Source of the DNA: Octopus bimaculoides
Lineage: Eukaryota
Assembly: GCF_001194135.2 (NCBI RefSeq)
Contig: NC_068987.1
Span: 63,134,460-63,185,990 of the forward strand
DNA length: 51,531 nt
Direction: 5' to 3'
Of the stretch, positions 2,080-24,971 are shown piece after piece (position 1 is the stretch's first letter; every line of letters begins with the position of its first letter). The notes beneath the pieces were generated by a model. The model was not told the origin of the DNA, searched no databases, and saw only the letters and a program-made list of their open reading frames with translations. Made by a program: the position numbers and the translations under genes.

Positions 2080-2229
2080 GGGAATGAGATGGGAGAGACT
2101 CTCAGCCGTTTTGCCAATGAACTGAAACTTCCTCAGCATCATTCCAGCCACCGAGACTTGACCCCATATGCTGACCTGATGCTCTGGCTCAAGAATGCGA
2201 ATTTCAATAGTTTTGTGAAACTCTCTAAG
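2080..2229 (+). CDS. EXOC1: EXOC1 exon (GNEMGETLSRFANELKLPQHHSSHRDLTPYADLMLWLKNANFNSFVKLSK)
   Basis: ttgcag|G acceptor and AAG|gtaaaa donor; 150 nt, phase 0-0; resembles EXOC1 LxLPxHHxxHRDLxxYAxLMxWLK. Confidence 0.95.
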
Positions 2230-3200
2230 GTAAAATACAATGGTCTATCCATCCATCGTCTCTGCTCACTATTTCTGGTTGAGTCATGGCGATAGAGTCC
2301 TGAAGCACCTCCTCCATAGGCTTCTATCTGAAGCAGTCGTCATTCAACCTTTCAGCTGGATTCCTAAGCACGACCATCTGAGACTATGGATATTACCCAA
2401 TCATCTCATTCTTGGTCTACCCCTAGGTATCCTACCATCTTGCAATTCTTTCTTCCAACATTCTAATCACACATCTGTTGTACCAGAGCTGTAACCTCTG
2501 AATGTATGATGTAGATTTGAAGGAGATTGGACAGATATTTCTAGTTTTTCGTACAGCCTCATAGAGGCTGTCTCATTGGCTTTTAGTAGCTTTATATAAG
2601 ATAAGCTGGTGGTATTTTTCACTTGCTTTCTTGTAAGCCTTAATAGTATAGCCAACACTCACAAGCAAATATGACTTCATAGCTTGTATCACACTTCTGC
2701 TAATTATTTTTAGTACCTCTGTAGTCTCATGCAAACATAGACATCCTGTTGGCCTTCCTACTCTTGACCCAGCAGCACATCAAGGATGTCACAGTTAGAA
2801 ATAGATAGGGCTACAGCAGTTGGTATTCTTTTTTTTTTTTTTTGGTGGGGCAAGTAGATTAGAGCAATGGGAAATGATGTGTCTTGCTCAAGGACACAAC
2901 CTTCTGCCCAGTCCAAGAATTGAACCTAAAACCTGATGATCATGAGCCCAACTGTAATCACTAAGCCACATCATTTAGGCATCATTGCTTCTTAATAGCT
3001 ATGACACCTAAGACTGGCTGGATAAGTAGGAATGCTGACTTTCCTGCTTTTACAAGGGTGTTAGCAACATCAATGAAATGCTTTCAACTGGAAATAAAAG
3101 TTAGTTTCTAGAATTGTTTTCATTGAAGCTTATATTTTGAGCTATACAGTCATTGCTTTTTACTATTCATTTTGGTCTCTTGTTTTATGTCCTTCTCTAG

Positions 3201-3303
3201 GTATACACAGAATCATTGAGCAAGCTTTATAACAAAGAGATTCAAGATTTTCTAGAATGTGCGAAGCAAAGACTTGTTGGAAAAGGAGAGAAAGGCAAAC
3301 TGA
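3201..3303 (+). CDS. EXOC1: EXOC1 exon (VYTESLSKLYNKEIQDFLECAKQRLVGKGEKGKL)
   Basis: cttctctag|GTA acceptor and A|gtaagt donor; 103 nt, phase 0-1. Confidence 0.94.
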
Positions 3304-3579
3304 GTAAGTAATTCTTACAGTGATTCATTGTGAATTAAATAACAGCTTCATCTTTTGAGTTTTCATTTGCCTTGAGTTTAGGTCAGTATATGCTCTGTTT
3401 GTATTGTAGTTTATACATTTTCTTAGAGCTGAGATTAATGTCACTTGACTTGACAAGTCTTCTCAAGCACAGCATGTTGCCAAAGGTTTCGGTCACTTGT
3501 CGTCTCCATGAAGCCCAAGATTTGAAGATCATGCTACTGGCAATGGACACGATTACATTTTCATGGGTACCAAAAAGAG

Positions 3580-3614
<35 letters not shown>

Positions 3615-4086
3615 GTCATCATCATCATCCTTTGTATTTGTGAATGAATTTTTATTTCCTTCGCATTCACTAGTTGATAAACAATGTTTTCCTGATGATG
3701 TTATTTGCTTGCAGTCCACCACAAAAGCATGTCTGGGTTTCTTGACATATCTTGACATGTGTAGTCTTTGTAAACAAAAGACTCATTCACTTGGTGCCTT
3801 TGTATCCAGTTTGTAAATAGTTTTTATGTCCACAGTGGTACTACAAACAAAGGAGAAAAAGAACTCAGTATGCTAGATAGAGTAAATATTTAATTGATGT
3901 GGTTATTGCTCCAGTTTTTAGCATTCTGTTCATTTGAGTTTAATGTCCTCTGTTCTTGATTATTCCTCTAGTGGGCCTGGCTGATGGAACAGATTCTCTT
4001 CCTGGCTGATTTCAATCTGTCTGATTCATCATTTTGAACCTGCTTTAACAGCCATAGAACATGAAATTCTGATATACACCCCCCTA

Positions 4087-4168
<82 letters not shown>

Positions 4169-4284
4169 CAGTGTGACTAAATGGTTATGCATGGCATCCT
4201 CAGCAAATGTTGTTTTCTCAAGCCTTGGGTCAACCCACTCATTGTGAATGAAATTGGGTCAACAGAATCTGTACATAAGCCCAT

Positions 4285-4520
4285 TGTTTGGATCATCATC
4301 ATTGCTTTTCATGCTGGCATGGGTTGAACGGTTTGACTGAGGACTGGCAAGCCAGGAGGCTGCACCAAGCTCCAATCTGATCTGGCAAGGTTTCTACAGC
4401 TGGATGCCCTNNNNNNNNNNTGCACCAAGCTCCAATCTGATCTGGCAAGGTTTCTACAGCTGGATGCCCTTCCTAACGCCAACCACTCCGAGAGTGTAGT
4501 GGGTGCTTTTTACATGCCAC
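4285..4520 (-). mobile_element. RTE-type LINE/SINE 3' tail with (GAT)n end
   Basis: catcatcat...ccatgctggcatggg...ctggatgcccttcctaacgccaacc motif recurring about ten times in the window. Confidence 0.7.
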
Positions 4521-4679
4521 AATTTTGTCTCACACTATGTCACTCTGATTCTGCCTGGGAATCATTAAGGACACATGCGTCTGTGGAGGCTCAGCCACTT
4601 ACATGTTAACTCAGGAGCAGGTAATTCATTGATGGAACAATTAAATCCTCATTGCCAAATGATGGACGTCTGCCATACA

Positions 4680-4712
<33 letters not shown>

Positions 4713-4761
4713 AAGAGAGAGGGATTTGTGTTTATATGTCATAGCATTTTATATATTTCAG

Positions 4762-4901
4762 ATCAGAAAACGTCTTCATCATCCAGTTTGACCAAAATGG
4801 CTGATAGAGGGCGTTCCTCCTCAATCCAAAGTGTTGATTCTGTAACATTTTCCAAGGATGGATCAGATTTAGATCTCAGTTCTAGGCAATTGTTTGATCA
4901 G
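4762..4901 (+). CDS. EXOC1: EXOC1 exon, Ser-rich linker (QKTSSSSSLTKMADRGRSSSIQSVDSVTFSKDGSDLDLSSRQLFDQ)
   Basis: atttcag|AT acceptor and CAG|gtatgt donor; 140 nt, phase 1-0; SDLD..R..FD motif. Confidence 0.92.
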
Positions 4902-6170
4902 GTATGTTTTAAACAAAGTGAATCTAGCTTGACAAAAATATTTTCTTTCTACATGTTATTGAGCCATGTCTCATTTGTCAACCAGCAGAAAATTTTATGT
5001 AAGTGTTTGGGTTGCTTACTTGAATCCTTTTTACTATAGATAAAATGAACCGAGAAAGACATAGGAAGAAGTAGTGAGTTAAAATCTTGGATGTTGAGCC
5101 TGTCACATGAGACGACAAAATAGTGAGACAGGTGGTAATATGATATGGTACTATGTGATATATATATGATATGATATGATATGGTATATGATACATACAT
5201 ATATATATGAAAAGTGGTATATGATATATAAATATATCTATATGATATATGACATTTTATGTGTGATATCATATAATGCAAAAGAAAAGTTCAAAGGTCC
5301 TTCCTGAGCTATAGGTTCACAAAGCTGATTTCCCAAATTTTGTGGCATATATATTCATGTCCTGGACAGGACACTGGTCTGTTGCAGGATTACTCATTTT
5401 TGCCAGTTGAGTGAACTGGAGCAATGTGAAATGAAGTGTTTTGCTCAAGAACACAGCACATGAACTGGTCCAAGAATCAAAACCACAATCTTATGATTAT
5501 GAGTGCAACACCGCAACCACTAAGTCACACATCCCCACATGATGCAATACAATATGACAGACCTGTATGTCTCATGCCAGTGAAGGAAAATGGAAGGCTC
5601 AAATGATAACGGTGATGAAAATACCACAACTATGATTTAAAAAAAGTTTTAATTTGTATATACTTAAATGTTGTTTAATCAGTTTGGTAGGGAAAAGCCA
5701 TGTTGGATTGGCAAATTGACTTCTATAGATGGTTGTGATATTTTGGATTTGAGGATTACTCGGATAAGACTTATGTTGTTTTGTCACACAAGAAACAAAA
5801 CTTATTCTAAAAGATTTTACATTAAAGACGCATAATAAGTATGCTGACTGAAATATTGATGTAACCCTTTTTTTTTACCGTATTTCTGTTGAAATACATT
5901 GATTTTGTTTTAATTAATTTTCAAAATAATCATAAATTTAGTAAAATAACTTCATCCTTGTTAAACTGGTATTAGGAGTATAAATTAACATGAAATTTTG
6001 ATGGAAGGTTATAATTTGGATCACTTTAAAATGGAAAGTTTGTATCACAAAGCCAGATGATACAAAGGACCTCTCCGATGTGTTAGGTTAAATAATTTAA
6101 TATAGCAATGGTCTTTACATGCTCCACAACCTAATAACATAATTCATCATTCATTTCTGCATTTGTTTGT

Positions 6171-6388
6171 TTAACCCTTCAGCATTCAGATTACTCTGTC
6201 AACTGTAATGCTTATTTATCCATATTGTTTTGAATTAATCTCATAGCTTTGAGATTTTTATTGTGTTATTGTCCATTTTCAGCATGACATTGTAGGGTAG
6301 GTATGAGAGCTCAGACCTGGCCAGTTCGAATATAAAACAGATAGAATATTTGGGCCTGATATGGCTGGTTTAAATGTCTAAGAGTTAA
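6171..6388 (+). mobile_element. TTAA-flanked piggyBac-like MITE
   Basis: TTAA|CCCTT start and ...AGAG|TTAA end; same family at 6518, 10964 and 32514. Confidence 0.7.
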
Positions 6389-6517
6389 AGTGAATTTTGT
6401 ATCCAGTGGGTCCTTATTGCTAAAGCATTAATAAAGAAAGGGACAATCAAGTTGACTCTATTATCAATATAGGGTAACACTGACAGTAAATGCTCAGTTA
6501 TTATTCTTAAAATTCCT

Positions 6518-6774
6518 TTAATCCTTTAGCATTTGAACTGGTCATATCTGACCCAGATATTCAACTTGTTTTATAGTCAAATTGGCCATATCCAGCCTCT
6601 CACACCTACTCTACTGTGTCACTCTACTCATACTTACCCTACAGTGACATTCTGAAAATAAACAGTCATGTCATTGAAATTCTTGAAGCTAAGTGATAAT
6701 TCATGATTAATTCAAAACAATGTGAATAAATAAACATTACATGTGACAGAGTAATCTGAATGCTAAAGGGTTAA
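6518..6774 (-). mobile_element. TTAA-flanked piggyBac-like MITE, inverted relative to the 6171 copy
   Basis: ttaatcctttagcatt...aatgctaaagggttaa terminal inverted repeats. Confidence 0.75.
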
Positions 6775-6803
6775 ATAATAACTATGAAAGTGGTAGTAAG
6801 TTT

Positions 6804-7034
6804 TTAACCATTTTGTTACCAACCTGACTGAAACTGGCTCTGGCTCTGAGTACAAATGTCTTGTTTTCTTAAGTTTTGAATTAAAATCTTCCACCAAACC
6901 TTAGTCACAATTTATGTTCCTAACAACACTAGCTGAATGATAACTAATTTATTTTACTAGATTCTTTGTTATATTTCAAGTAATTGAAAGAAACACAGAG
7001 CATCTCAAAATAAATACAGTAACGAAAGGGTTAA
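6804..7034. mobile_element. Second TTAA-flanked MITE family (related copy at about 37481-37694)
   Basis: ttaaccattttgttacc...gtaacgaaagggttaa termini. Confidence 0.6.
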
Positions 7035-7365
7035 AAAAATTATATAAATATTGATTTGGGCTGTCAATTGGTACTTTGCTGGGTGATACAGCTCTCTGTT
7101 GTTAGTAGTTGGGTTGTTGTATGAGATAAGTGTAACATGAACTAGCAGTGCTAGTTATCTCATGGGATACTCAAATTATCTCATGAGATAAATGATACCA
7201 GCTACAACCACATCCAAGTTAGATATAAAAAAAGAAGAAAAGTGTCATGTCTTCTCTCACAATAATGGGAACAGTATTAATGGGTCAGTATCTGAATCTT
7301 TATTGTATAATCATCAAATTCCATTTCTATCCTTAGTTTTTTTCCCCTCATTATACCTCACACTA

Positions 7366-7563
7366 AGGCAGTTAGCTGGCAGAAGTGTTAGCATGTTGGG
7401 CAAAATGCTTAGCAGCACTTCATCTGTCTTTACATTCTGAGATCATATTCCACCGAGGTTGACTTCACCTTTCATCCTATCTGGGTCAATAAAATAAGTA
7501 CCAGTTGAGTACTGGGGTTACTGCTTCCCTTCTAAATACTGGCCTTGTTTTCAAATTTGAAAC
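7366..7563 (+). mobile_element. tRNA-derived SINE (family A, core tttcatcctttcggggtcgataaaataagtaccag)
   Basis: gagctggcagaa...ctgagttcaaattcc head plus shared core. Confidence 0.75.
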
Positions 7564-7641
7564 CCTTATATCTGATACCCTCCCTGTCAAAATTTTCATG
7601 TTGCTATTTAAAAAAAAAAAAAATCATCTTTTTGTTATTAG

Positions 7642-7737
7642 ATTTTGGATAAAGTATTATCAGAACTGGAACCAGTATGTTTGGCTGAGCAGCACTTCAC
7701 AGTTCGATTTTTCCATCTGGCTGATAATTGTACATTG
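7642..7737 (+). CDS. EXOC1: EXOC1 exon (ILDKVLSELEPVCLAEQHFTVRFFHLADNCTL)
   Basis: ttgttattag| acceptor and TTG|gtaagt donor; 96 nt, phase 0-0. Confidence 0.95.
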
Positions 7738-8167
7738 GTAAGTATACCAAGAACTTGTTATTTGAAACAAAAATTTAGTGATAGATAAAATGAAGCTTTG
7801 TAGCTGAGAGCTTAAAACTTTGGACTATTGACCACACACACACTTACATATATATTGCTATCAGTTCCTATATTACTGCAACTGGCTACAATATTTGAAT
7901 ATGTATATGGAGTGAGACATTGTTGTTTAGTAAAGGAGTTCACTTTTGAACTATGAAATTAGGTGGTTTGTTCCCTCTGTATGTTGTTGGCTAACATTCT
8001 ATACCTCAGTAAAAGAGTCACCCAATAAATACCTTGTGAGTGAAATTGCTAGAGAGAAACTGTAGAAGCCTCTTATATAAGCCTCATTATTTTATATGTT
8101 TTTCTGAATTTGTCCAGTAAAGGGTTTCCTATTGACAGATGATATTATTATCATTGTGGTTTATTAG

Positions 8168-8226
8168 GAACAGAAAACCAGCTCAGAAGACGAATCAGAC
8201 CCTGGAGCTGTGAAAAAAACCAACGA
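8168..8226 (+). CDS. EXOC1: EXOC1 exon, acidic linker (EQKTSSEDESDPGAVKKTN)
   Basis: tttattag|GAA acceptor and GA|gtaagt donor; 59 nt, phase 0-2. It is needed to bridge the phase between the 7737 and 26258 exons. Confidence 0.85.
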
Positions 8227-8329
8227 GTAAGTAATTTAATGTTTCCTACTTCTTTAATCTACCAATAGCTAAAAAGTCTCAGCAGAAGGGCATCCAGGAA
8301 TCATGACCTGGATGTGGCCTGGCCTCTTT

Positions 8330-9600
8330 AGGGTATAAGAAGTTAAGGGCCAAAACACTTGTCTGAGTGGGGTTTCTTCTCTGAAGACCTTCTGCTGTTC
8401 AGGTCTTTTAAGAGTTTCTTACCACTGCCCTTCACATTATTTGCAATGTTTTACTATTTTTAACTATCTTTATTTGCAGACCTTACATATAATGCTGTTT
8501 AAAGTCTTTTTTTGTTTGTACTTTGTGAGTAAATTCTCATCACTTTGTCTGAGTGTTGTGGAAGGGTTCCAACCACCCCTCAAGTGACTAAAGGTGGACC
8601 GGCTCATTGTTATAAAGTAAAGAACTGTGAGCAATTGGCAGTTTAGATTGGTAAGCAGTTTACTGTGAACCATTGATTGAGGGTGTTGAGTCTCGTGAAA
8701 TAGTGATCGTATTGCATCGCATAAATACTTTCCAATACCAGGTTATAAAACTGTGACAGATGAATCATTAACTTCTTGGTTAAGAAGAATGGGATGGGTA
8801 ACCAACATTAATGCAATTAATCTGGAACTCAAAAAGATGGAAGTTAGGATGTTGTTAGATGTTAGGATAATGTTGGATGTTAGTATGCTATGGGCCCTCA
8901 CCTCCTGATGGAGTCTTAGGAGTATCATTGTGACATACTGTGTTTCTTGGTCAATGTTAGGCCTGGTGGAGCTCCTTCCTCTGCAAGCCTGACCACTGTC
9001 AATTTTTTCCAAAGAGAGAAAGAAAGAGAGAGAGAGAAGAATTGATCTCAGGTTAGAGCTGGTATTTTTTTATCAACTCTGAAAGGACGAAAGGCTAAGT
9101 TGATGTAATATTTGAACTCAGAGCGCAGAGAGCTGAAATGAATATGACAAAGCTCCAATGGTTCTGCAAATTCACCATCTATGTTTGGGTATTGTTGGAA
9201 GTTACGAGAGGTTTGGGGGTTTCCCACTGTGAAGTACTCTTTAGAATGAAACATTGTGATTAAAGCTTGGTATGGGTTTTAGAGAAAGGCAGTCTACAAT
9301 GGGTTTTGCTAATACTTGCAAGGGAGAAGCAATAGGTAAATTGAAAGAAAGGCTGGAAGTCAAATTGTCAGGTATATAGGTAAGCTATTATAATGGATAA
9401 TAAAAATAGCAGAGATGAATAACATTGTGGTGGTGAGCTTGAGTTTGAAGATTTTTTTTTAGTAAGGAAATTTTATTGATCATATGATAGCTTTTTTCTG
9501 CATTTGATTAAAGATATCACTGATAGGAAGTGTAGCAAGATTCCATAGTAAAGACTATTTGCACCTTGAAGAAAGTCAGTTATCATCATCTGCAACTACC
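8330..9600 (-). mobile_element. Heavily decayed Penelope-like element (RT tail to GIY-YIG region) interrupted by a SINE A fragment at about 9030-9180
   Basis: Frameshifted minus-strand peptides (GQACRGRS, ...SMVHSKL..KLPIAH) resemble the GIY-YIG region; family assignment is inference. Confidence 0.4.
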
Positions 9601-9617
9601 AAGTTTTGGAGTGGGTA

Positions 9618-10220
9618 GGTGTCTCGTTTGACAATGTTTCTCCATTCATCTTCTGCTGCTATTATTAATTGTTATATAAAGGTAGCAAGCTGGCAGAATT
9701 GTTAGTATTCCAGGCAAAATGTTTAGTGGCATTTTGCCTGTCCTTTATATTCTGAGTTCAAATTCTGCCAAGCTCAGCTTTGCTTTTCATCCTTTCATGG
9801 TTGATAAAATAAGTACCAGTCGAATATTGGGGTCAATCTAATCGGCGTACCCTCTCTCCTGAAATTGCTGGCCTCGTGCCAAAATTTGAAGTCGACTTTA
9901 CCGTTTGCCCTTTCTGGGTCGATAAAATAAATACTAGTTGAGCACTGGGGCCGATGTAATTGAATAACCCCAATTTCCGGCCTTGTACCTATAGCAGAAT
10001 GAATTATTAATTGTTACATGAAGGCAAGAAGGCAGGAAGAATTGTTAACACACTGGGCAAAATGCTTAGTGGCATTTATTCTGGTTTTATCTTCTGAGTT
10101 CAAATTCCACCAAGGTCAGTTTTGCTTTTCATTATTTTGGTGTTGAGCACTGAGGTTGATGTAATTGACTAGCCCCCTCTTCCCAAAATTTCAGGGCTTG
10201 TGCCTATAGTAGAAAGAATC
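9618..10220 (+). mobile_element. Cluster of three head-to-tail SINE A copies/fragments
   Basis: Repeated gctggcagaatt...gagttcaaattc...tttcatcc...aagtaccag...ggggtc units. Confidence 0.75.
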
Positions 10221-10963
10221 ATCAGTTGTTACATCTTCAATCTTGTTATCTCCATAATGTGATCAATCCAGTTTTTTTTTACTAGGTTTTTCTTGTAGCC
10301 TATTTCCAGAGGCTGTTCCATTGGATAATAACTTTTACAGACTATCTGTTTTTGTGAGATGCACTCAATATCTTAAGTATTTGTTAATCAAGTTCTTTTA
10401 CAAAGCACTCTTCAGTTCCAATTTGATCCAACACACACTGATTCATCCTTTTATTTCTGCCCAGCTAATTCTTAACATTCTTCTGTAACATCAAACTCTA
10501 TCTTTTTTTTCTGTCAACTTTTTCAATCTGGTAGGAAAAATTGTAATTAGTTTGTTCTTTACAGAATTCTGGGGTCAGGTTGGTCTAAAAAGATTAATGC
10601 TCTGCTGTCTTTTTTATCTCTCATGACAAAGCCCTGCAGACTAGTCTTTACAGGCTAGTTTCTGTGGACCAGTCTTTGCAGAGCAGTCTTTGCAGACTAG
10701 TGCTCTTGTGAGGGGACAATGTCTATGCTGAAATGATAACATTTAAGCTGGCAAGAGCTGTGCAGGATGTGTTAGTCCAGAATTCATGACCCACTGATGT
10801 GTAAACATGCTCTGGGTGCCACCAAGCTGCTTCTAGTTATTGATAAATATCTAGGCATGACATTAGTACCTTCATACATGAAACCTAGCTTAGAGGAGAT
10901 TACTTTCTTTAATCTCAGATAACAAGTAACCTAAGAAGTCTCTCTAATGTAAGCCACCCTTGT

Positions 10964-11191
10964 TTAACCCTTTAGCATTCAGATTACTTTGTGAAATGAA
11001 ATGCTTATTTATTCACATTGTTTTGAATTAGTCATGCATTATCTTTTAACTTTAAGGTTTCAATGATGTGATTGTTTATTCTTACAGTGACATAGTAGAA
11101 TAGATGTGAGGGGCTGGATTTGACCATTTGGAACATAAAACAGGTAGAATATTTTGGATGGATATGGCTGGATTAAATGTTAAAGGCTTAA
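10964..11191 (+). mobile_element. TTAA-flanked piggyBac-like MITE
   Basis: ttaaccctttagcattcagattac start, similar to the 6171 copy. Confidence 0.7.
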
Positions 11192-12370
11192 ACGGAACTG
11201 GGCAGCAAATATAACTGTATAACTGCCTGGTGAAATAACCTTCATTTATAAGACCTTCGCAAGGATTGACTGCCCTTGTTCATCAAGAGCTGCTTTGTTA
11301 AAAAGTACTGGTACATAAAACTTGACAGTGCAACTGTTTAGATGTTTAAAACTGTTAAACTAGTAAGAACCAACTTAAAAATAAGTATCAACATGGCCAG
11401 TGATACAATTCCATACATGCATGTATGTGTGTATACATAGAGGCATGCTTGGAAAACTGCCTAAATTCTACAAAAATGCCTTGTATCTGGATTGGAGGCT
11501 GGCTTTTTCTCTACTTGGGTGGAATTTGGAACATAAAACCAAATATGAGTTTGCATATATGACCCACAATAATATAAGGTCTGCATGTTAAATTTCCTCC
11601 ATCTTAGTTCCTTACTAACCTAATCAACAAATAACAAAAAAAAAAAAACAGAAGAAAGCTTGCTCCCTTTCAGTTTGTTGTGCCAAACTGAAACAAAAAT
11701 CTTTACCATTTCTAGAAACAGTGAGTCTTTGACAGAATGCCTGGGATAAATATCCAACCACTGATAACAATAACCATGGAATTTCATATTTTTATTTATT
11801 TATTAAATTTCAATGGCGGTAATTTCTTTTAAAATTATGTATTTGTGTGTATATATGGGTATATGTGTATGTAAGTGTGTGTGTTTGTGTGTGTGTGTGA
11901 ATGTGCATACTTGTATGTACATGTGTATGTATATATGTGTATCCATATACCTATACATACATGCATTTATATGTAAGTAAGTATGTATGTGTGTGTATGT
12001 GCACATACGTATATATATATATATATAAAAAAGTGTAGGTGGCATACGAGTGGGTATATATTTATAAAAAAGAAGTTTGAAAACGCCAATATATAAATGA
12101 ATTTTAATTTATAATTTTGTCAGAGATATTTTTAACATGTTTCGGTTCTTGAAAAAACAAACCTTATCAAAAATACATATTTAAAAAAATTAAATTAAAT
12201 GAAAAGTTCATAATTGTTCCTTACTGGTGTCAACATATATATATATATACACACACATTCCACTCTGATTTGAAACAACTATATTTATTTTATTTCATTC
12301 TATTTTGCAGATTTTCCTTTTGCTGTCTTAATATTTTATTTCCTACCATTCCTCTTCTCTCATTAACCCT

Positions 12371-12375
<5 letters not shown>

Positions 12376-12448
<73 letters not shown>
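12376..12448. repeat. (TC)n microsatellite
   Basis: Direct inspection; many other (TA)n, (TG)n, (GA)n, (CAT)n and (CTA)n tracts occur throughout the window. Confidence 0.95.
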
Positions 12449-12454
<6 letters not shown>

Positions 12455-12664
12455 CTACACCCAAACTCTATCCATACATATTTCATTATTTCTGTTTTTT
12501 TTTCTTGCTTTGAATGTTATTTTCCCTTATTTTGTGCACAATATCTTTCCCTTCAAGCTTTGTCAAATTTATTTATTGAATGCTCACACACAAAAAAAAT
12601 GATAAATAAATTCAAAGAACAAACAAACAAACAAGCAAACTTTATTACCCTGATTCATTTTTAG

Positions 12665-12724
12665 GGATTACTTTGTGGAAAATTTAGGGGAAGGATTATA
12701 TCAAAAACGGTCAACGGTGCAAGT
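12665..12724 (+). CDS. EXOC1: Candidate alternative 60-nt EXOC1 cassette exon (DYFVENLGEGLYQKRSTVQ)
   Basis: ttcatttttag| acceptor and |gtaagt donor; length divisible by 3; open in the phase-2 frame of the host intron. Confidence 0.55.
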
Positions 12725-13041
12725 GTAAGTAGCCTGATGGCAGAACTGGTGTTGTTGATGCTATTTATTGTTTGTTGTCTTGGTCTTGTTCCCTTCTTTG
12801 CTCCAATCTTTGCATTTGTTGCCAGTTGAAAGTGGTTTCCCCATTTTTACTACCTCCTTGTTAATTCTGTTTTTTTGTTGTTTTTTTTGTGTTTGGTCAT
12901 TTGTTTATTTTTTGGTGGTATTATTATTATTATTATTATTATTTATATATTTTGTTGTTTTAGTATATTTTATGTCTGAATGTTGTGTGTGTATATGTAT
13001 GTTCAAAGATATGTGTTTATATGTGTGTATGTATGCATGCA

Positions 13042-13081
<40 letters not shown>

Positions 13082-13088
<7 letters not shown>

Positions 13089-13365
13089 TAAATAAGAAAT
13101 TATATATATATATGTATACAATTATATTAGGGGAGCGAGAGTAAAAAGAACAACCTATCTCCAACATGCTTGAATGCTGATGCATTCAGACACTACCAGA
13201 AAACTCCCAAAATATACACGTGTATATTTTTTGAGTTTTTCGGTAATGTCTGAATGCATTGGCATTCAAGCATGTTGGAGATAGGTTGTTCTTTTCACCA
13301 TTGCTTCCTTAATATAATTATATACATACATATATATATATATATAATTATTAATTTAATGTATA
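13082..13365. repeat. Loopless near-perfect palindrome of about 280 bp (foldback/MITE-like)
   Basis: Centre tatacac|gtgtata at 13219/13220; the arms are reverse complements with few mismatches. Confidence 0.9.
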
Positions 13366-13581
13366 AATTATCTATAACTTTTTATTGCATGTTGACTACC
13401 TGATAAAAAATCAGTAACATGATTTTATCCTTATATTCTAGTATGAATTAAAAAATAATATATATAATATATATATACTTCGACTAGAGGTTGTGTTAAC
13501 CTCATGAAGGGATGGTTTCATCCAAGGAAATACTGGTTCAATACCTAGTATTTTGGGGGGAATTAATTTCCTTAAAATAAT

Positions 13582-13614
<33 letters not shown>

Positions 13615-13619
<5 letters not shown>

Positions 13620-13827
13620 GCACATATATAAAAACATATCGCTTATATTCATATAAAAGAAGAAAAAGAAAGTGGAAATTGGGAAGTTAATAATTGTTTA
13701 TTATTAACAGCAAATTAATCATCTTCACTTACAGCTGTATATATATTTGTGTGTGTGTGTGTGTGTGTGTGTGTATGCATATATATATATATATATAAGC
13801 TGCATGTACAAATAATATATTAATGTT

Positions 13828-13876
<49 letters not shown>

Positions 13877-14084
13877 GCACATATATAAAAACATATCGCT
13901 TATATTCATATAAAAGAAGAAAAAGAAAGTGGAAATTGGGAAGTTAATAATTGTTTATTATTAACAGCAAATTAATCATCTTCACTTACAGCTGTATATA
14001 TATTTGTGTGTGTGTGTGTGTGTGTGTGTGTATGCATATATATATATATATATAAGCTGCATGTACAAATAATATATTAATGTT

Positions 14085-14110
<26 letters not shown>
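13615..14110. repeat. Tandem duplication, period about 257 bp, bounded by microsatellites
   Basis: Two apparently identical copies of aaaacatatcgcttatattc...gctgcatgtacaaat. Confidence 0.9.
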
Positions 14111-14118
<8 letters not shown>

Positions 14119-14182
14119 CGTTATTTGTGTGTATGAATATGTACACATGTGCATGGATATATGTATATGTGCATGTATGTGT

Positions 14183-14414
14183 TATTTCTTTACTACCCAC
14201 AAGGGGCTACACAGAGAGAGGACAAACAAGGACAGACAAACAGATTAAGTCGATTATACCGACCCCAGTGCGTAACTGGTACTTATTTGATCGACCCCGA
14301 AAGGATGAAAGGCAAAGTCGACCTCGGCGGAATTTGAACTCAGAACGTAGCGGCAGACGAAATACCGCTAAGCATTTCGCCCGGCGTGCTAACGATTCTG
14401 CCATTTCGCTGCCT
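14183..14414 (-). mobile_element. Young full-length SINE A with 17-bp TSD
   Basis: CpG-rich intact head; TSD tatgtgcatgtatgtgt at 14166-14182 and 14415-14431. Confidence 0.9.
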
Positions 14415-14847
14415 TATGTGCATGTATGTGTGTGTCTTTCCCAACCTAACTATAATTACTCTTTAAGTCTGTACAATTTTCCTTTGCCATTATTTTGATC
14501 TGGGATGATGTCCTTATTTATTCAAAAGTTACTCATGTCACTTCTATCTTTGGTCTAAAGAGCTAAACAGCAACACATATAATGTAATATATATACGCAT
14601 ACAGTTATCATGTGAGTGTCAGCCTAGGGTTTAACAATAATAAAATCACTCTGATTGAGCAAATATTTGATCAAAGGCATTCTAGTCCTCATAAAGCCTG
14701 CATAGTTCAATATGCTCCTTTTTATGATAGTTGGGTATGATTTGAGAGAGATTTGGCTTCTATCATCAACAAGTGAATCAACCACGACGCAGATCCCTTG
14801 TTGGATTGCTATTATCTGTTATTTAATTAAGGTTTTATATATATATA

Positions 14848-15031
14848 TACAAAATTAAGAAGAATGACCACCAAAAGTGGACTCCTATATGCTAGAAATA
14901 GATGCCAAATCACCTAACCACGAAAAATATGTTCTCAAGAAAAAAATGTTTTTCTTGAGAACTAGGTGATTTGACATCTATTTCTAGCATATAGGAGTCC
15001 ACTTTTGGTGGTCATTCCTCTTAATTTTGTA
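14848..15031. repeat. About 185-bp hairpin/foldback element
   Basis: Arms 14848-14916 and 14963-15031; inner stem 14931-14944/14949-14962. Confidence 0.9.
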
Positions 15032-16284
15032 TGTAATATAATTTTAATCTTTGGATTTTTTAAATATGCTAGGCCACTGGGTTTAATTGATTAATATCAA
15101 TTTCTACCCTCATTAAATTTGTAAATAAATTTATATACATATATATATATATATATAAATATATATACAAAGGAAGTAAAAAAAAAGCATCAGTTGATTG
15201 CAACTCTTTCAATATAAAGAGTCTAAAGGAGCATGCAGTGAATGCTGTATGCAGTATAGCTCATGCAATATGCTATATGGAATGTGCCTTATATGTACAA
15301 TGCAATATATGAGACATGCCTCATGAATTGCATTGCATGCTATGTTTGTATGCAATATGCTGTGCTGTGTGCAATGCACTGCATGCTATTTGCAGTATGT
15401 GAACACTGGTGAATACTGGAGTGTCAAATAGCATCTTGTAAGAATATATGGACTAAAGAAGTGCAATACTATCGTTTAGAAAATCATATAAATGGTGAAT
15501 GATGTTGCTGTTTAGCCCCAGGTTAGCCTTGATTGAGCAAGCCTAAGATCAAAGTCATTCCAGCCATGACTATCTGATATTTTTTTTGTTTTTGTTTTTG
15601 AAGCATAGTGTGTATAGGACTAGATTATTCAATGCTCTTTCTTTTCTTAAGATGATGGGATGATGGTGTAATTTGACAGAAAACTTTTGTCTCCTGTTTC
15701 TAATAGTTTGAGTGACCACACAGAGGCTTTCTCTGTTGTTGTATAATTCATATATTGTATTGTGTTGCAATATGTTTCAGTAAATATATGTATGTATATA
15801 TGTTAATTTTTACAAGTTTGTCAGTGAAAGCTTTGAAGTTTCGGTTTGCTCATCAATGTCAGATAGTCTGATGTTAGTGAGCAGGTTGAAACATCAAATT
15901 CATTGTTAACTTTTACCTTGTAAAAATTAATATGTACTCTACTAAGAAGTATTGGGCAATCTTCCAGTTTAATGTTAAATTGTTTTTAATATATAACTTG
16001 ACATAAAAACAAACACTAAACATCTTATATATATATAGTGATGTATTTTAGCTATATAAAATAGTGAAAGATTAGTTGAACAAGGACTCAAGATGGAACG
16101 GAATTGAATTATTTATAATTTAGAAATTGACTGTTACTTCAAACTTTTGTTTAATAAGGTTTTTTAAACTGTTTGAAAAGCGTAATTCATTAAAAATTCA
16201 AATTAATGATCAGTTTCTAACTATGAGAGTTAAAAAATAGTCAAGATTAAAATGATAACAATTATGGTGATGATTAGGATGAAG

Positions 16285-16565
16285 ATATCATCATCATCAT
16301 TTAGCATCTACTTTCCATGCTGGCATGGGTTAGACAGTTTGACTGGAACTGGTAAGCTGGAGAGCTACACCAAGTTCCAGTCTGATTTGGCATGGTTCCT
16401 ATGGCTAGATACCCTTCTTAATGCCAACTACTCGAAGGGTGCAATAGGTGCTTCCTACATGCTATTATGTGCCTCTGGCATATGTGCTCCTATGTGCCAC
16501 CAGCACGGGTGTGAGACACGTGATATCAGCATTGACCACAACTACGATTTCACTTGGCTTGACGA
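16285..16565 (-). mobile_element. RTE-type 3' tail
   Basis: catcatcatcattta...ttccatgctggcatggg family motif. Confidence 0.7.
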
Positions 16566-16573
16566 GTTTTGTG

Positions 16574-16607
<34 letters not shown>

Positions 16608-17929
16608 TGAAGGAGTGCTGGAAAGTTTCTGGCTTTAAGGGTATTGTGAAAGACCTGGTTGGAGAATCAACCTTCTGAGTTCTTTTACAGGGCTTAGAAC
16701 AACCAAGGACTGCTGCAATAAATGTGTGAATCCAAGAGGGGAATATGTTGACTAAAATCATAATTAACTGATCCTCCTTTTACTGATTCTTCTTTTACTC
16801 AAAGCCAGGAACTTTTCAGCACCTCTGCATATCGTTTATTTATTTTACATCTATTTTTTTCATGCTAGCATGGGTTAGATGAAGATTTATTTGATTATGG
16901 CCAGATGGTTTTCCTGCCAACCCTTTACTTGATTTTCAATTAAAGGAGGTTTTAATGTTCCACTTGTCATCAAAAGTGCAGACTGTTCAATTTGTCAACA
17001 GGGAATGTAAACGTTACTTCACTGTTTTACCCTTCTTGGTGACAAGTGAAGATAAAAATGTCAACATTTGTGCACAAACAATGATGGCCAGCTTCCATGT
17101 ATTTTCTGTCTACCAATGCTACTTAAAAGGCATTGGTTGGCTCAAGGCTGTAATAGAAGGCAGTTGCCTAGGGTGTCATGTCGTGAAATGGAACTCAAAA
17201 ATCATGTGGTTATGAAGCGAATACCATATCTACATAGTTATGCCTGCACTGTGTGTGTGTGTTTGTAAATACACGTGTATCTGTATATGTATGCTTTGTA
17301 TATGCAGTGACAGTATAAACCTCCCAGTGTATCTATAGTTTCGTTGCATGTGTGAAGTCTGTCTGTTACCTTCTGTGTCCAGCAGCATTCTATATTATGA
17401 ACGATTGTGGTTTTTATGCTTTGGCTGTTGTTACTGATGTTTTGGTACCCCTCTCCATGTTTGGAACCTAACTTGTGTATTGTATTATAACTCTGTTACA
17501 GTCGTATAAAGAAATAATAATAATAATAATAATAACAACAACAACAACAACAACAATGATGATAATGATGATGGCGATTATGATGATAATATTAATAACA
17601 GTTTGAAACCCTGTGGCTGGGAACTGAATTTCATAACCACACAGCCATGCCTGCGCTTGTTTAGCTTCTTTGTGAATATGAATCCCTGTTTGTATCAACA
17701 TATACAATATTTAATGGTATTGTTAGCTGAGATAAAGTCTGAACCACTACTAGCCAAATGTATCTGAGGCAGTATGAGTGTTTGTGCAGTTGATACTCAA
17801 TCTGTTGCTTGGTTTAACAACTCCACCATTTCCTGATACCTTGGATGCTTATGGTAGAGTCTTCACTCTGTCACCTGCATTCAGGCCAAGTCTTCAGCTT
17901 GAAGATATCTTTCATCCATCAATCTAGAA

Positions 17930-18289
17930 CAGTGATTCTTATCTGGGACCCATATGGCCCCTGAGGGTCCGTATAAAATTTTGGGGGTGGGGGTGGGGTT
18001 CCACATAATAAAATAGTAAATTAGTGATCCACAATAGAATTTGGAGAGCCCCCGAAAAAATTTTGCTTTAGATGTATGTATTGGTATGTATTGCAAGAAA
18101 CAGCTAGTTTTCTTTCTCTAACATTTTACATAGTTCAACCTACACAAATTAATGGGTGAAAAACAAAATAGGAATTTTGAAAGAAGTTTCTATAAAACTA
18201 GTTTTTAAACATCGAATGGCTATGGGGGCCCACCAGAGTAAAATAGTAATCAAAGGGGTCTATACATGAAAAATGGTTGAGAACCCCTG
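17930..18289. mobile_element. hAT-type non-autonomous element with 8-bp TSD ATCTAGAA
   Basis: cagtgattct...agaacccctg termini; TSD at 17922-17929 and 18290-18297; homologous to 43363-43710. Confidence 0.85.
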
Positions 18290-19499
18290 ATCTAGAAGCT
18301 CCTGTATAAGGTTTGTGGACACAGCCTTCTCTTCTGATTAGAAGATTTTTAAAAATTGATGTAAAGTAGCCAGGTGTGTTTCCACATGAGATTCCCAAAT
18401 TCCCTTCAACTACTTTCAGTTTGTAGGTTACTTACTTTATCAATGATTGGTTCAAAGTACATGTAAGAAGACAGTTGCCCAGGCTGTCAGTCATGTGGTG
18501 AGATAGAATTTTAAAAAATCCACAGTGCCTATTACACCTGCAGAAGGCTATGTCACATTCTTAACTTCTACACTCATCCTTACAACATTCATATCTCACC
18601 ATATGTTCCTCACTTTACAGTTGAATCATTACAAATGAATAAATGAGCTTTAGTTGATAGTAAAATAAAACATAATGTTCATGTGGTATGTCATGACTGG
18701 GTGGGTATGATACTTTGGAAATATCTTTTTCTTCAATCCCTAGCCTGCGATGGGAGGGGGAGGCTGTCCTCTCAACCAATATGCTGCAGTGGGTACTGCT
18801 GGATGACAGACTCTGGTGATGATGTTATTCCACACTTTCTGATCCATGGCGCTGGCCTTAGCATGCTTGTGGTCAAAGTGCTGTGACTTCATGTCTCCCT
18901 CAATTTGTTTAGCCTATGCCTTCTTTGGCATAAGTAAAAAAAAAAAAAATTGTTTTCAAAAAATGAAAAGAAAAAATAATTATTCTCACAATTTATGTTA
19001 ATTTGTTCAACAAGCCTATTTATTTGTTTTATTAATTAGTTAGACGAGGAATGGCAACAGCACCTTTGACCTTTGTAGGCCTTTTGCAGACTGATGAAAT
19101 CAATAGTAATGATGTTCTGTCTGAACTTCTGCAGATCACTTCCTGAGGATGAACATGGCCAAGAAGGAAAGTCTAGAGACTGAAACTCTGAAAAGTAATA
19201 TTTGGACAGTGTTCAGCAGTAGATTTTGTTGGGGAGACATAGTAAGGATGATGAGGAGGGGATACACTCACATATACGTGTCTATTGAGTCTGGGTGGAA
19301 GTTGTGAGCAGCTTGTCAGTTTAGAGGAATAAAGATTCTGTCTTTGCCAGTCAACTGAAAAGTCTATTCTTGATGTTTTTCAGACTATAACAGCAGCATT
19401 ACCATCATAGATATGTTAGCACTACTTTTCTCTTTTTCCTTCTTCTCTTGTTCTTTTCTGTCTTGCAAGTTACTTGAGAACCCCATGGAAAAAATAGCA

Positions 19500-19840
19500 T
19501 GCAGTACACACTGTAAAGTGGTTGGCGTTAAGAAGGGCATCTAGCTGTAGAAACCATACCAAAGCTGATGTGGAGCATGATACAGCCCAGTGGCTCACTG
19601 GATTTTGTTAAATCATTAATATATATCTTACGCTCTCGGAGTGGTTGACGTTAGGAAGGGCATCCAGCTGTGGAAACTCTGCCAAATCAGATTGGAGCCT
19701 GGTGTAGCCATCTGGTTCATCAGTCCTCAGTCAAATCGTCCAACCCATGCTAGCATGGAAAGCGGACGTTAAATGATGATGATGATTAAATCCATACCAG
19801 CATAGAGAACAGACATTAAATAATGGTGATGATGATGATA
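19500..19840 (+). mobile_element. Two RTE-type 3' tails (one nested or adjacent)
   Basis: ggcgttaggaagggcatccagc...ccaacccatgctagcatggaaagcggacgttaaatgatgatg. Confidence 0.75.
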
Positions 19841-20197
19841 CTCTAAGAGGGGTCCACTTTAGCTTTGAGAAGGGTTATCAGCTGTTCGGAGCTGACTTTA
19901 AAGAAGGGGTCTAGCAATTGGGATAGAAATTTGGCAATGACATATATGTAAGGTTGCTTTGAGAAATCATTGGGCAGCGTGAAGTGAAACATAGAGACTT
20001 TGAAGGTTTTAGAGTGTGTTTATATGTGGAGAGGGCGTAATGCAAGATTGATTCCATGTTATTGTATCTTTGTAATGCTGAAATTGTCTCTGTTTTTAAT
20101 TGAAGAATGATTTTGAAGTCTCTCTTCATAGAATCAGTGTACACATGAATTGATGTGGCTAGATTATTTGTAGGTGATACTTGTGTGTGAAAGGTTA

Positions 20198-20510
20198 TCT
20201 TTCTTATGCACCCTTTTAAAGCCTAGCCAGGCTCATGGGTCTGGTTTCCCGATTTCTATGGTGTATGTGCTCCCCCCAGCAGGACGGGACGCCAGTCCAT
20301 CGCAGCGTTACTCAAGAAACAGGAAGAAAGAGTGAGAGAAAGTTGGGGCGAAAGAGTACAACAGGGGTCGCCACCACCCCCTGCCGGAGCCTCGTGGAGC
20401 TTTAGATGTTTTCGGTCAATAAACACCCACAACGCCTGGTCTGGGAATCGAAACCAGGATCATCCGACCGTGAGTCCACCACCCTAACCAATGGGCCATT
20501 GCGCCTCCAC
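20198..20510 (-). mobile_element. tRNA-derived SINE (family C head) with 13-bp TSD
   Basis: Minus-strand ggaggcgcaatggcccattggttaggg...ggtttcgattccc head; TSD gtgtgaaaggtta at 20185-20197 and 20511-20523. Confidence 0.88.
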
Positions 20511-21152
20511 GTGTGAAAGGTTAACAAAAGTACAAAGGGTAGTATCATTTGTGAAGAAATGTGTGGTGTGTGCTTTGACATAATAACATGTACAAAAGGG
20601 GAGATTAGTAAGAGATGTTAACAAACCTTGGACCATACCACAATACGTCTATGAAGGAATCTTTTTTTTGGACAAACACTGTAGCTATTGGCTTTTCAGA
20701 GATATATTGACTTACATCAAATATGTCACAAAGATAAAGATTTTAAGAAACCAATATTGGTCTAAGTCATTGAGTCACTATTGATTCCTGATTACAGAAC
20801 CTATTTCATTTATGCCAATAATGCTTTTGGCTCCACTATGCATATTTTTCAATTTTTGTTATATTTTCTTTCAGTTTGCATTTTCTCCTCTTTTTCTTCA
20901 GCGCTTTTTTGTGTTTTTTTTTGTATTGTCTGCATTTTAATCGCTTTGTTATTTGTTTTATTGTTTCCTTTTCTTTTTCTTTTATAAAATTTTATTTTCC
21001 CTTTTTTTCTTTTCACCTTTCCTTTGTTTTTGCAGCTTTCTTTCCTTCTTTTTTACTCTTGCTCTTTGTTTATTTTTAATTTGTTGTGTTTTTGTTGCAT
21101 CATGACTGTGTATATGTATGTTTGTATGTATGTTTGTATGTGTGTGTGTGTG

Positions 21153-21215
<63 letters not shown>

Positions 21216-21599
21216 GTAATTTATTTACTGTACAGTTGTGATTTTTTTTGTTTCTATATTTTTTGTTGGTGTTAAGGTTATGGCTCTTGTTGTTATTGAA
21301 TGGTGTATATATATATTTTTGAATTTATATTGTTGTTTTTGTTGTTCTTCATTACGTTAAAGATCCAAAGATCTTTAGTTCAATGTTGGGGTTCAGCATC
21401 CTGAAGATAGTATTTAGTAGTTTTGCAAATTCTCAAAATTATTAGAGCATCAGACAAATTTCGTCTTGGTATTTGTCCCAATTTTTTTTACATTCCAAGT
21501 TCAAATCCTACCAAGATCAACTTTGCCTTTCATTCCTCCCAGGGTCAGTACGAAAAGCAATACTATGAAAACAACCAAGAGATTGATTGGTAGAATCAA

Positions 21600-22200
21600 C
21601 AGCTTTATAGAAATCTTAGAAATCACTTTGTTTTGATTGTTGCTTATCATCTCCTCCTTGACCAACTTATATTCCTTCACCTTGCCCCAAACTGACAGTC
21701 ATTATCATGCCTCCTTCCCTGTATGCCATTCACTACATCACCCTATATGCCTATCTATATTCCCTGCCTCTGACCATCTGTTATCTCTTACTTGATCCTC
21801 TGTCCTTGTTCATTTCACATTCACCTTGTTTTTTGAGGGTATGACCTGACTCCACATCACCATCACTTTCTCTCCTTTTCCAGCTGGGGTATCCATGTAT
21901 CTCCTCTACAACATCAGTTTCTCCCCAAAACTGATTTTCACTGCATCCACCTCAAACCTCATCTCTAATCATCCATCATACTCTTTTCACTCTAGTGCAC
22001 TTACCTACCCACCCATTTTTCTTTTCCTCTTTCTCTATTCTCTCTTTATGCCTATTCACCCTGTACCCACACCTCATCTCGCTCTGTTTCCAGATGAGGA
22101 AGTTGTGTATTCACTTCTTCAACAAGATTCCTTCTCATGTCCCTCTATCATATTTTTATATCCCCTCAATACTTTACTTAACCTAGTTGAGAAAGTCTTA
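21600..22200 (+). mobile_element. Decayed Penelope-like RT remnant
   Basis: TASTSNLISNHP peptide resembles the Penelope TASNLIxxHP..FY.LPKIHK region; many stops. Confidence 0.3.
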
Positions 22201-23279
22201 TCTTGTAAGTACATGGTGACCTTACCAATGCAGATACCACAAAAAAGAAAAAAAGCACCCAGTACACACTGTGAAATAGTTGGTGTTAGGAAGGGCATCT
22301 AACTCTATGTAAAAACCATGTCAAAGAAGACATTGCAGATTGGTGCAGCTTTCTAATTTGTCAGTTCATGTTGAACTGTCCAACCCATGTGAGCATGGTA
22401 AAAGGGACTTTAAATGATGATGATCGCCATCATTATCATGAATCTAGTGTTGCTGATGCTGATGAGGCCCATTGTATGACAGGAAAAATATTTAAAAAAT
22501 AAAAGAACAACAACAACAACAAAAATCCAGCATGATTATTGTGATGATGGTGTTGGTGGTGATGGTAATGTTGTGGTAATGTCAATGAGAATGTTTATGT
22601 TGATGCTTATAATAATTGTAATCATATATATTTATATATGCTCTTAATTAACAATTTAATCAAATCCTAAATTGCTTTAAAATAAATAAACAAACAAAAA
22701 AAACAGGAAGAATGTGACATTTTGAAGTATGATTGATGATTTACTGATTTCTTGTGCTTAATTTGATTAATCATTTTTCCATTTGTTTGTATTTTAAATT
22801 TCATCATTGTTATTTTTTTGTTTCATTTATTTTTATTTATTTATTATTAATTTCATTATGACAGAATATTCTAAGCTGACATAGCAATGTCATAAGAGTG
22901 TGGATGCATTTTTCTCTCCATGTCTTCCTCTTTCACGCACACACATAATGAGAAAGCTGTTTCTATTGACCTCCCCCCCCATATATATATATATATATAT
23001 ATATATCCCCGAGTTTGTATAATTGTGTATAGATGAATATATTAATCAATGTTATTCCAACATACTCTGATTTTCACATTTTATTATTTAGTTTTACCAT
23101 ATTATAATAATAGAATATTATATATTATTATGATAAAACTAGTACTTTCATGTGTTACGCAATCATCAGGTTTATGTAGTAGTAGTGACAGTCATGTTCC
23201 ACAATTGACATACATATATTGTGTGTGTATAGTTAGATGTATGACTTCTACTGTTGAGTGTTTTGCACTTCATGTAAAT

Positions 23280-23572
23280 TGGTAGTTCCCAAAGTGGGTG
23301 GTACTGCCCCCTTGGTTGTGTATGTATGTAGAAAAATCCAGTGAGGTTTTGAAGAAAAGTGTGGCGATAATGAGGTGGCAAAGAGTGGGTGATGGATGTA
23401 ATAAAACCCCCAAATAGTGGGTTAATTAGGCTAAGTTTTACTTGTGAAATATAGTTGTTTTAAATTTGCTGCAGAAAGTGGTCTATGTTTGTGATAGTGA
23501 GAGGGGTGGAGCATTAGGAATGTGGCCTGGGTGCCAAGTGGGTCGCAACCTGAAAATGTTTGGGAACCACTG
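23280..23572. mobile_element. hAT-type MITE
   Basis: ...gttcccaaa / tttgggaaccactg TIRs; 8-bp TSD atgtaaat / atgtagat (7 of 8). Confidence 0.75.
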
Positions 23573-24253
23573 ATGTAGATTATCATCATCTAATCTCTTT
23601 CCAGTATAGTGGTTTGCTTACTTCTTTACTTAATAGTATCCCTAGTTACGGTATACAAAGCAAATGTAGAAATAGTTATGATCAACATGAGTCTATAGCA
23701 TTTCTTCCCTACATATGTTTCACTGTTGTGGTTGTTTGGAACCTTTATGCTGGAGGTTGCAGAGATTAAATGTTTCTATAAGGGCATCCAGCTGTAGAAA
23801 CCATGCCAAATCTTTTGCAGCTCCTCGCCATTCCCAGCTTGACAGCTCTGGTCACACCATCCAACCCATGCCAGCATGGACTACGGATGTTAAATGATGA
23901 TGAGGATGATGGTATTTGCCTGATGATCCGTTGTTGTTAAGCGTCCAATTGAGTTTGAGGTAAATGGACCATGAAAACGAAGTAGACCGAGAAAAACATA
24001 GAGGGGACAGGTGGAGGAGGAAATTGGGAGGGTTGACTTGAGAAGGGAGGATACCCAAAACAGGGCAAGATGGTGAGATGGTGTGAGGGCGGTTGCTATA
24101 GCTTTGAGGTAGATTTGGCGACCCCTGTTAATGGGGACAAAACCTGGATTTAAAACATTGCATGATGATGATGATGAGTACAGAGGTTCCAAGCAACTGC
24201 AGTGGTGAATTGTACATGAGGAACATATATAAACTTGTGTTTGTCATAATTTC

Positions 24254-24296
<43 letters not shown>

Positions 24297-24909: not shown

Positions 24910-24971
<62 letters not shown>

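Follow-up and report, generated by a model that had tools for sequence, protein, structure and literature searches.

A probable 60-nucleotide cassette exon of EXOC1 (Sec3) in Octopus bimaculoides with counterparts in gastropods and bivalves

The question raised by this locus is whether a 60-nucleotide (nt) segment inside a long intron of the exocyst gene EXOC1 (Sec3) of Octopus bimaculoides is an optional exon and, if so, where else it occurs and what it might do to the protein. The DNA analysed here, referred to as the window, is a stretch of 51,531 nt of contig NC_068987.1 (assembly GCF_001194135.2, forward strand, 63,134,460 to 63,185,990); all coordinates are counted from its first letter, and the segment occupies 12665-12724. 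A preliminary description, made from the letters of the window, had proposed it as an in-frame cassette exon. Sequence comparison with other molluscs makes it very probable that window 12665-12724 is a genuine EXOC1 cassette exon, orthologous to a 60-nt alternative exon of gastropods and bivalves.

On its + strand the window carries the 3' half of EXOC1: its spliced exons match the Pfam family Sec3_C-term (PF20654; E = 4.6e-64, 217 bits, cut-off 23.7), its named orthologues are EXOC1, and P0129, a transcript product of a relative, is colinear by tblastn with the series of window exons that starts at 2080 and reaches a stop near 41059. The spliced window protein gave 308 database matches at E <= 1e-10; among the best 120 of these, every match with a functional name is exocyst complex component 1/Sec3, the others being unnamed or 'hypothetical protein'. 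The top named BLASTP matches, both over 100% of the query, are EXOC1 of Ruditapes philippinarum (56% identity) and of Pomacea canaliculata (53%). The host gene named in the preliminary description is therefore borne out by the Sec3_C-term match and the colinear EXOC1 orthologues. The features that matter for the argument are listed below, with a slash for an exon border.

2080..41059, + strand: 3' half of EXOC1/Sec3, about 16 exons, to the stop codon after ...SNIARLH
7642..7737, + strand: exon for the first helix of the Sec3 C-terminal domain, ILDKVLSELEPVCLAEQHFTVRFFHLADNCTL; it borders the loop N-terminally
8168..8226, + strand: upstream constitutive exon, EQKTSSEDESDPGAVKKTN followed by GA; a linker of poor conservation with phase 2 at its 3' end
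8227..26257, + strand: host intron, 18,031 nt when removed whole in the skipping isoform; use of the cassette would split it into 4,438 and 13,533 nt
12645..12664, + strand: 3' splice site of the cassette, a pyrimidine-rich tract plus TAG, ttaccctgattcatttttag
12665..12724, + strand: candidate 60-nt cassette exon, phase 2 at both ends, 1 + 19 codons + 2 nt, encoding (E)DYFVENLGEGLYQKRSTVQ(V)
12725..12730, + strand: cassette donor (5' splice site), GTAAGT, in full agreement with the consensus
26258..26281, + strand: downstream 24-nt exon, cag/A CGG CAG ATC AAT GAA GAA ATG CG, giving RQINEEMR
27607..27687, + strand: next exon, RMMTDLFPSLETELENFITFADKLDG; conserved second helix of the Sec3 C-terminal domain

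The segment has the anatomy of an exon. Positions 12645-12730 of the + strand read ttaccctgattcatttttag/GGATTACTTTGTGGAAAATTTAGGGGAAGGATTATATCAAAAACGGTCAACGGTGCAAGT/gtaagt, and the borders of the 60 nt at 12665-12724 are ...tgattcatttttag/GGATTACTTTGTGG...ACGGTGCAAGT/gtaagtag. Canonical AG and GT dinucleotides flank it (tttttag/ and /gtaagt), with 76% pyrimidines at positions -20 to -3 of the 3' splice site, so that the 60-nt segment between a ttcatttttag acceptor and a gtaagt donor stands as it had been read. It is stop-free in frame 1 only, giving DYFVENLGEGLYQKRSTVQ, and this is the phase-2 frame set by exons 8168-8226 (3' end ...AAA ACC AAC GA/gtaagt) and 26258-26281. The skipping product is ...KKTNERQINEEM... 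(KKTN-E-RQINEEMR) and the inclusion product ...KKTN-E-DYFVENLGEGLYQKRSTVQ-V-RQINEEMR..., both in frame through the later exons as the preliminary description had required; the 20-amino-acid (aa) inserted peptide is DYFVENLGEGLYQKRSTVQV, placed after the junction Glu, and the spliced translation agrees with the KKTN-insert-RQINEEM product that had been predicted. Classification as a neural microexon (about 3-27 nt) is ruled out by the 60-nt length. The neighbouring 24-nt exon 26258-26281 is itself of microexon length (<= about 27-30 nt), yet appears constitutive.

How often such a segment would arise by chance can be asked within the host intron. Intron 8227-26257 contains six GTAAGT on the + strand, one being its own 5' splice site, and only the GTAAGT at 12725 pairs with a YAG behind a pyrimidine tract of at least 70%, at a length divisible by three and with an open frame; the statement that this is the sole perfect GTAAGT with a matching acceptor holds, one of the six passing on every count. 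Random first-order Markov introns would be expected to hold 0.03 such strict candidates. Under relaxed criteria 3 candidates were observed against 1.24 expected, and without any filter on splice-site quality the intron has 68 frame-preserving, stop-free AG...GT candidates. Taken alone, the uniqueness of this candidate is post hoc and suggestive. Scanned in six frames with BLOSUM62 against the insert of Pomacea, the whole window scored 60 at position 12666 and 26 at the next-best place (102,950 positions); against the insert of Ruditapes the best score was 53 and the next-best 30.

A 20-aa insert is found at the identical junction, directly before RQINEE, in Pomacea canaliculata, Ruditapes philippinarum, Argopecten irradians and Mytilus californianus. 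In the protein alignment, isoform X2 of Ruditapes reads ...KITIQ-EYIVENLGEGLTSRIPTSQL-RQINEEL and the Pomacea model PVD35270 reads ...SAANE-EFYVENLGQGLLQKRLTPDM-RQINDEV, whereas in Ruditapes X4 and Pomacea X2 the flanks are joined directly, without the insert. The isoform pairs, obtained from cluster look-ups, are computational models of NCBI:

Pomacea canaliculata: with the insert, X1 (XP_025088335.1, 741 aa); without it, X2 (XP_025088337.1, 721 aa)
Ruditapes philippinarum: with the insert, X1 and X2; without it, X3 and X4
Argopecten irradians: with the insert, X1 (XP_069131564.1, 803 aa, NYYMENLGEGLYQRRVSSQM); without it, X2 (XP_069131565.1, 783 aa)

One further carrier, Mytilus californianus XP_052076459.1 (KYFMENLGEGLYQKRRTVLM, E = 7e-15), emerged when 1.84 billion representative proteins were searched exhaustively with HMMER, using a profile centred on the cassette. 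Since genes of a snail, a clam, a mussel and a scallop share the insert at the same junction, we regard it as an old molluscan splice variant. The likeness among these cassettes covers the gene, the junction, the 20-aa length in all four species and an ENLGxGL core in all. Ruditapes differs in having an extra 9-aa exon (LVDDDSYPR) upstream of the cassette, a counterpart of which was sought in the window with noise-level scores only. This optional LVDDDSYPR, carried directly upstream of the cassette by Ruditapes X1 and X3 (P0131, P0004), yields four isoform combinations in the clam.

The correspondence extends to the genomic exons. At the Pomacea locus (L002) the upstream exon, ending at about 17654, closes with ...GCA AAT GA/gtaagt; the cassette is a 60-nt exon at 18946-19005, ctgtctttgtag/G GAG TTC ... 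GAC AT/gtgagt; and the exon that follows it, at 22741-22764, is of 24 nt, G CGA CAG ATC AAT GAT GAG GTT AG/gtaagt. The Mytilus locus (L005) has a 60-nt exon at 10003-10062, tttatattttag/G AAG TAT ... CTA AT/gttagt. Length, phase (1 + 19 codons + 2 nt) and splice-site positions of the cassette are the same in the window, Pomacea and Mytilus, the AG and GT of the window exon aligning with those of the Pomacea (gtgagt) and Mytilus (gttagt) exons, and the neighbouring exons agree between the window and Pomacea. The Pomacea cassette differs in its flanking introns, which measure 1.3 and 3.7 kb against 4.4 and 13.5 kb in the window. Conservation of the frame and splice sites in related species, which the preliminary description had named beside junction reads as a check on its proposal, is seen in the Pomacea and Mytilus genomes. 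By sequence, the cassette is orthologous to an exon already in the NCBI models of Pomacea, Ruditapes, Argopecten and Mytilus.

The pattern of conservation is that of a coding exon rather than of its surroundings. Nucleotide identity of the exon is 62-78% (window against Pomacea and Mytilus), whereas the 60 nt on either side are 27-33% identical, as random sequences would be, and the flanking introns are unalignable. Codon by codon, the comparison is as follows:

Window against the Mytilus exon: 15/19 aa and 47/60 nt identical; third-position differences 7/12; synonymous/non-synonymous codon changes 6/4
Window against the Pomacea exon: 11/19 aa and 37/60 nt identical; third-position differences 13/22; synonymous/non-synonymous codon changes 8/8

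This substitution pattern is consistent with purifying selection on the encoded peptide. In the peptide alignment (A6) the inserts of the other four species are 55-75% identical to that of the window; ENLG-x-GL is invariant in 5/5 species, with E5, N6, L7, G8, G10 and L11 fixed, and the window peptide fits x-[YF]-x-[VM]-ENLG-[EQ]-GL-...-[KR]-x-x-[ST]. The constitutive linker exon 8168-8226 is barely alignable between these species, so that the optional exon is better conserved than its constitutive neighbour. The linker exon diverges strongly among relatives too: it encodes EQKTSSEDESDPGAVKKTNE (20 aa) in the window and ETQTSSQTDQSHHEGEDGESWQTKKISNE (29 aa) in the relative represented by L001 and P0129.

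The insert can be placed in a loop of the C-terminal domain. On a Ruditapes fragment starting at the cassette, the Sec3_C-term match begins at the last cassette residue, at profile position 37 (RQINEE), so that the insert falls within the domain, in a variable loop that connects the first helix (ILDKVL...FFHL, exon 7642-7737) to the second (RQINEE...LFPSLE). An AlphaFold2 model of Ruditapes X2, built on a 58-sequence alignment (mean predicted local distance difference test score, pLDDT, 81; predicted template modelling score 0.68), has confident helices at 275-309 and 362-379 and a loop at 316-360 with pLDDT <50. The insert, residues 346-365, is mostly within this loop, where it forms two short low-confidence helices, and its last residues run into helix 362-379. 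Profile and model together support the earlier placement of the insertion in a variable linker before a conserved helix. The best Foldseek matches of the model are the Exo70 crystal structures 2PFT and 2PFV, which are CATCHR-type rods (E = 2e-5, TM 0.42-0.53); the resemblance is at the fold level only, and it fits Sec3 as a rod subunit of the exocyst with the insert in an inter-helix loop. A sequence search of the PDB with the window protein found no match.

A mechanism can be sketched. The spliceosome would either join 8226 to 26258, skipping the cassette, or include it by way of the 12664/12665 acceptor and the 12724/12725 donor; we infer that in O. bimaculoides the cassette is alternatively included. 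Inclusion would add 20 residues to an exposed variable loop of the Sec3 C-terminal helical-rod domain. The hydrophobic-acidic core [YF]-x-[VM]-ENLG-x-GL may act as a short docking motif, and the conserved [KR]-x-x-[ST] after it would fit a basophilic-kinase site, possibly phosphorylated, so the insert might change partner binding or phospho-regulation and in this way tune exocyst assembly in the cells that include it. Because length, phase and the ENLGxGL core have been kept while the constitutive linker diverged almost beyond alignment, the cassette looks like a functional, regulated exocyst module. A bolder version is offered tentatively, and we would sooner bet against it than for it: a mollusc-wide, possibly lophotrochozoan, regulated switch, in which ENLGxGL and a basophilic Ser/Thr site in the exposed Sec3 loop would give a distinct form of the exocyst a partner or phospho-regulation of its own, perhaps in neurons or in secretory tissue. 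The ENLGxGL motif has no counterpart in the vertebrates, insects and Priapulus examined.

Several points weigh against the cassette reading or its functional extension. The only transcripts of the relative (P0005 and P0129, one cluster, Logan run SRR27666073) represent the skipping form, reading ...KKISNERQMNEEM; P0005 shares 69% identity with the window protein in BLASTP and 83% in a MAFFT alignment. Since these transcripts lack the insert, they also establish that skipping occurs in the lineage. Use of the exon and its alternative status in O. bimaculoides are predicted from homology, and the isoforms of Pomacea, Ruditapes and Argopecten are computational models. In the related genome (L001) the contig ends 2.3 kb past the upstream exon, short of the expected position of the cassette. 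As for function, the low pLDDT of the insert may reflect the scarcity of insert-bearing sequences in the alignment, and since few aligned sequences carry the insert it is no proof of disorder; a functional role for ENLGxGL and [KR]-x-x-[ST] as motifs is what we infer from their sequences.

An alternative account concerns regulation, by Rbfox. The preliminary description had noted several TGCATG (Rbfox-type) hexamers downstream of the segment, with the caution that they arise easily in TG/CA repeats, and had suggested a tissue-specific, possibly neural, isoform. Function of the exocyst in neurons makes a neural isoform plausible, and at the Pomacea locus (L002, about 19031-19166) three GCATG, two of them TGCATG, lie at +27, +119 and +157 downstream of the cassette, where about 0.3 GCATG would be expected per 300 nt. 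In the window, however, the picture is different. The hexamers do exist on the + strand at 13034, 13038, 13386 and 13801 (the first three had been placed one position off; 13801 was correct), but none is within 300 nt of the exon: the nearest is about 310 nt downstream, inside TG/TA repeats. Flanks of 300 nt on both sides of the exon are free of GCATG in the window and in Mytilus, and the window total of 47 TGCATG against 44 +/- 7 expected is no enrichment. The copies at 13801 and 14058 moreover sit in a 257-bp perfect duplication. On this evidence a Rbfox-dependent, neural-specific cassette is rather unlikely, and Rbfox-type control was rejected for want of nearby motifs.

Two further alternatives accept the homology of the exon and dispute its present use. 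It could be a relic, an ancestral mollusc exon that is still recognisable and has fallen out of use in this lineage, as the skipping by the relative's only transcripts, P0005 and P0129, would allow; this is very improbable, for the frame is open, the GTAAGT donor perfect and the acceptor good, and the peptide is identical to that of Mytilus at 15 of 19 positions with substitutions biased to third codon positions. A disused 60-nt intronic segment would not hold such features across the divergence of mollusc classes. Conversely, the exon could be constitutive in this species, always included, the direct 8226-26258 join never being made. In strength its splice sites equal those of the constitutive exons beside it; set against this are the skipping isoforms modelled in Pomacea, Ruditapes and Argopecten and the relative's RNA, which assembles to the skipping form, and constitutive inclusion is accordingly judged a slim prospect. 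The weakest alternative is a pseudo-exon, never spliced in, where AG and GT flank an open frame by chance within a long AT-rich intron. It can point to the abundance of AG and GT in introns (the 68 unfiltered candidates), yet it is excluded for practical purposes by the inserts of four other molluscs, which match at this junction and in Pomacea and Mytilus come from exons of equal length and phase, by the six-frame scan (60 against 26) and by an exon 62-78% identical at the nucleotide level within unalignable flanking intron. A genuine cassette exon, orthologous to that of gastropods and bivalves, is the reading that we retain.

The exon has so far been placed in molluscs, namely one gastropod, three bivalves and O. 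bimaculoides. Among the best 120 of the 308 protein matches, the insert is absent from the vertebrate, insect and tick sequences, and the Priapulus EXOC1 locus (L009) gave no cassette-like sequence (best score 22). Four other contigs (L004 and L006-L008) have the RQINEE exon and no cassette, each with <0.9 kb of upstream sequence, and a degenerate DNA pattern of the cassette had 0 matches in JGI metagenome contigs. A 120-aa query of linker plus cassette had as its sole protein match P0001, an open reading frame fragment of the related genome (locus L001); that locus carries the exons up to the 8168-type exon (about 17910-17972) and ends 2.3 kb into the host intron. In P0124 and P0125, genomic open reading frames of other animals, the RQINEEMR residues are fused with the next exon, which implies intron gain or loss near the 24-nt exon.

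Optional exons of EXOC1 are known from vertebrates. In Danio rerio a cassette (ATLPRKESALKQETES, X8 against X11) resembles the mollusc one in belonging to the same gene, in being short and in frame, and in falling in a poorly structured linker. It differs in position, its GKGKF/LHGSSGKL junction corresponding to window 3303/4762, ahead of the first C-terminal-domain helix, and its sequence is unrelated. The analogy with vertebrate linker exons drawn in the preliminary description is therefore unsupported, since junction and sequence both differ; a homologue of the vertebrate 15/16-aa linker cassette, sought in the window, gave a best score of 18, which is noise. A neuronal 24-nt EXOC1 microexon has been described in human (bioRxiv 10.64898/2025.12.16.693263), and Mbnl-linked skipping of an Exoc1 exon in mouse (PMC7498679). 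Each of these two events, distinct from the mollusc cassette, attests EXOC1 as a target of regulated splicing in animals. The human microexon is of 24 rather than 60 nt, and its junction peptides (IDFVNVSSQLLEELPK... and VTEESVPSGENQ...) are unlike any part of the stretch studied. These peptides presumably belong to the N-terminal part of the protein. A mollusc cassette is mentioned in neither report (bioRxiv 10.64898/2025.12.16.693263; PMC7498679), and in the literature on exocyst splicing in molluscs we found no description of it.

If the source EXOC1 model is without the exon, an alternative isoform that carries it ought to be annotated, a step that the strong evidence from four other molluscs warrants. 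The cassette also offers a handle on the specialisation of exocyst isoforms in molluscs through its isoform pair, its defined motif and its candidate phosphosite, while the known mechanism of the exocyst and general knowledge of splicing are unchanged by the finding. Should the switch reading prove true, it would add an undescribed, lineage-specific layer to the control of exocytosis.

The surroundings of the exon are rich in repeats. As the preliminary description had observed, microsatellites lie around the segment, including (TC)37 at 12375-12448 and (TAT)8 at 12919-12943. The (TC)37 tract lies 217-290 nt ahead of the cassette acceptor and could offer a PTB-type repressor a CU-rich stretch to bind; no tract of this type is present upstream of the Pomacea or Mytilus exons. 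Window 13585-14118 holds 2.1 copies, 100% identical, of a 257-bp unit, which would stem from a very recent tandem duplication or else from an artefact of assembly. A 167-aa open frame on the + strand (975-1475, VKKMYFWMLVKSYGISALKRIQNDETMIIKQADEGGAIVIMDVEYYKDL...), which precedes the first EXOC1 exon within the window (2080), looks like a fragment of a mobile element. A translated motif ...QSLVSGFG[RW]KLKEA... recurs beside microsatellites at about 1664-1831, 35112-35246 and 45801-46007, which indicates a dispersed repeat, possibly one resembling a short interspersed element. The window further contains 276 N in short runs embedded in microsatellites (about 1750, 4400, 41360-41500, 45900, 46590 and 49040-49140), which look like assembly gaps or masked stretches.

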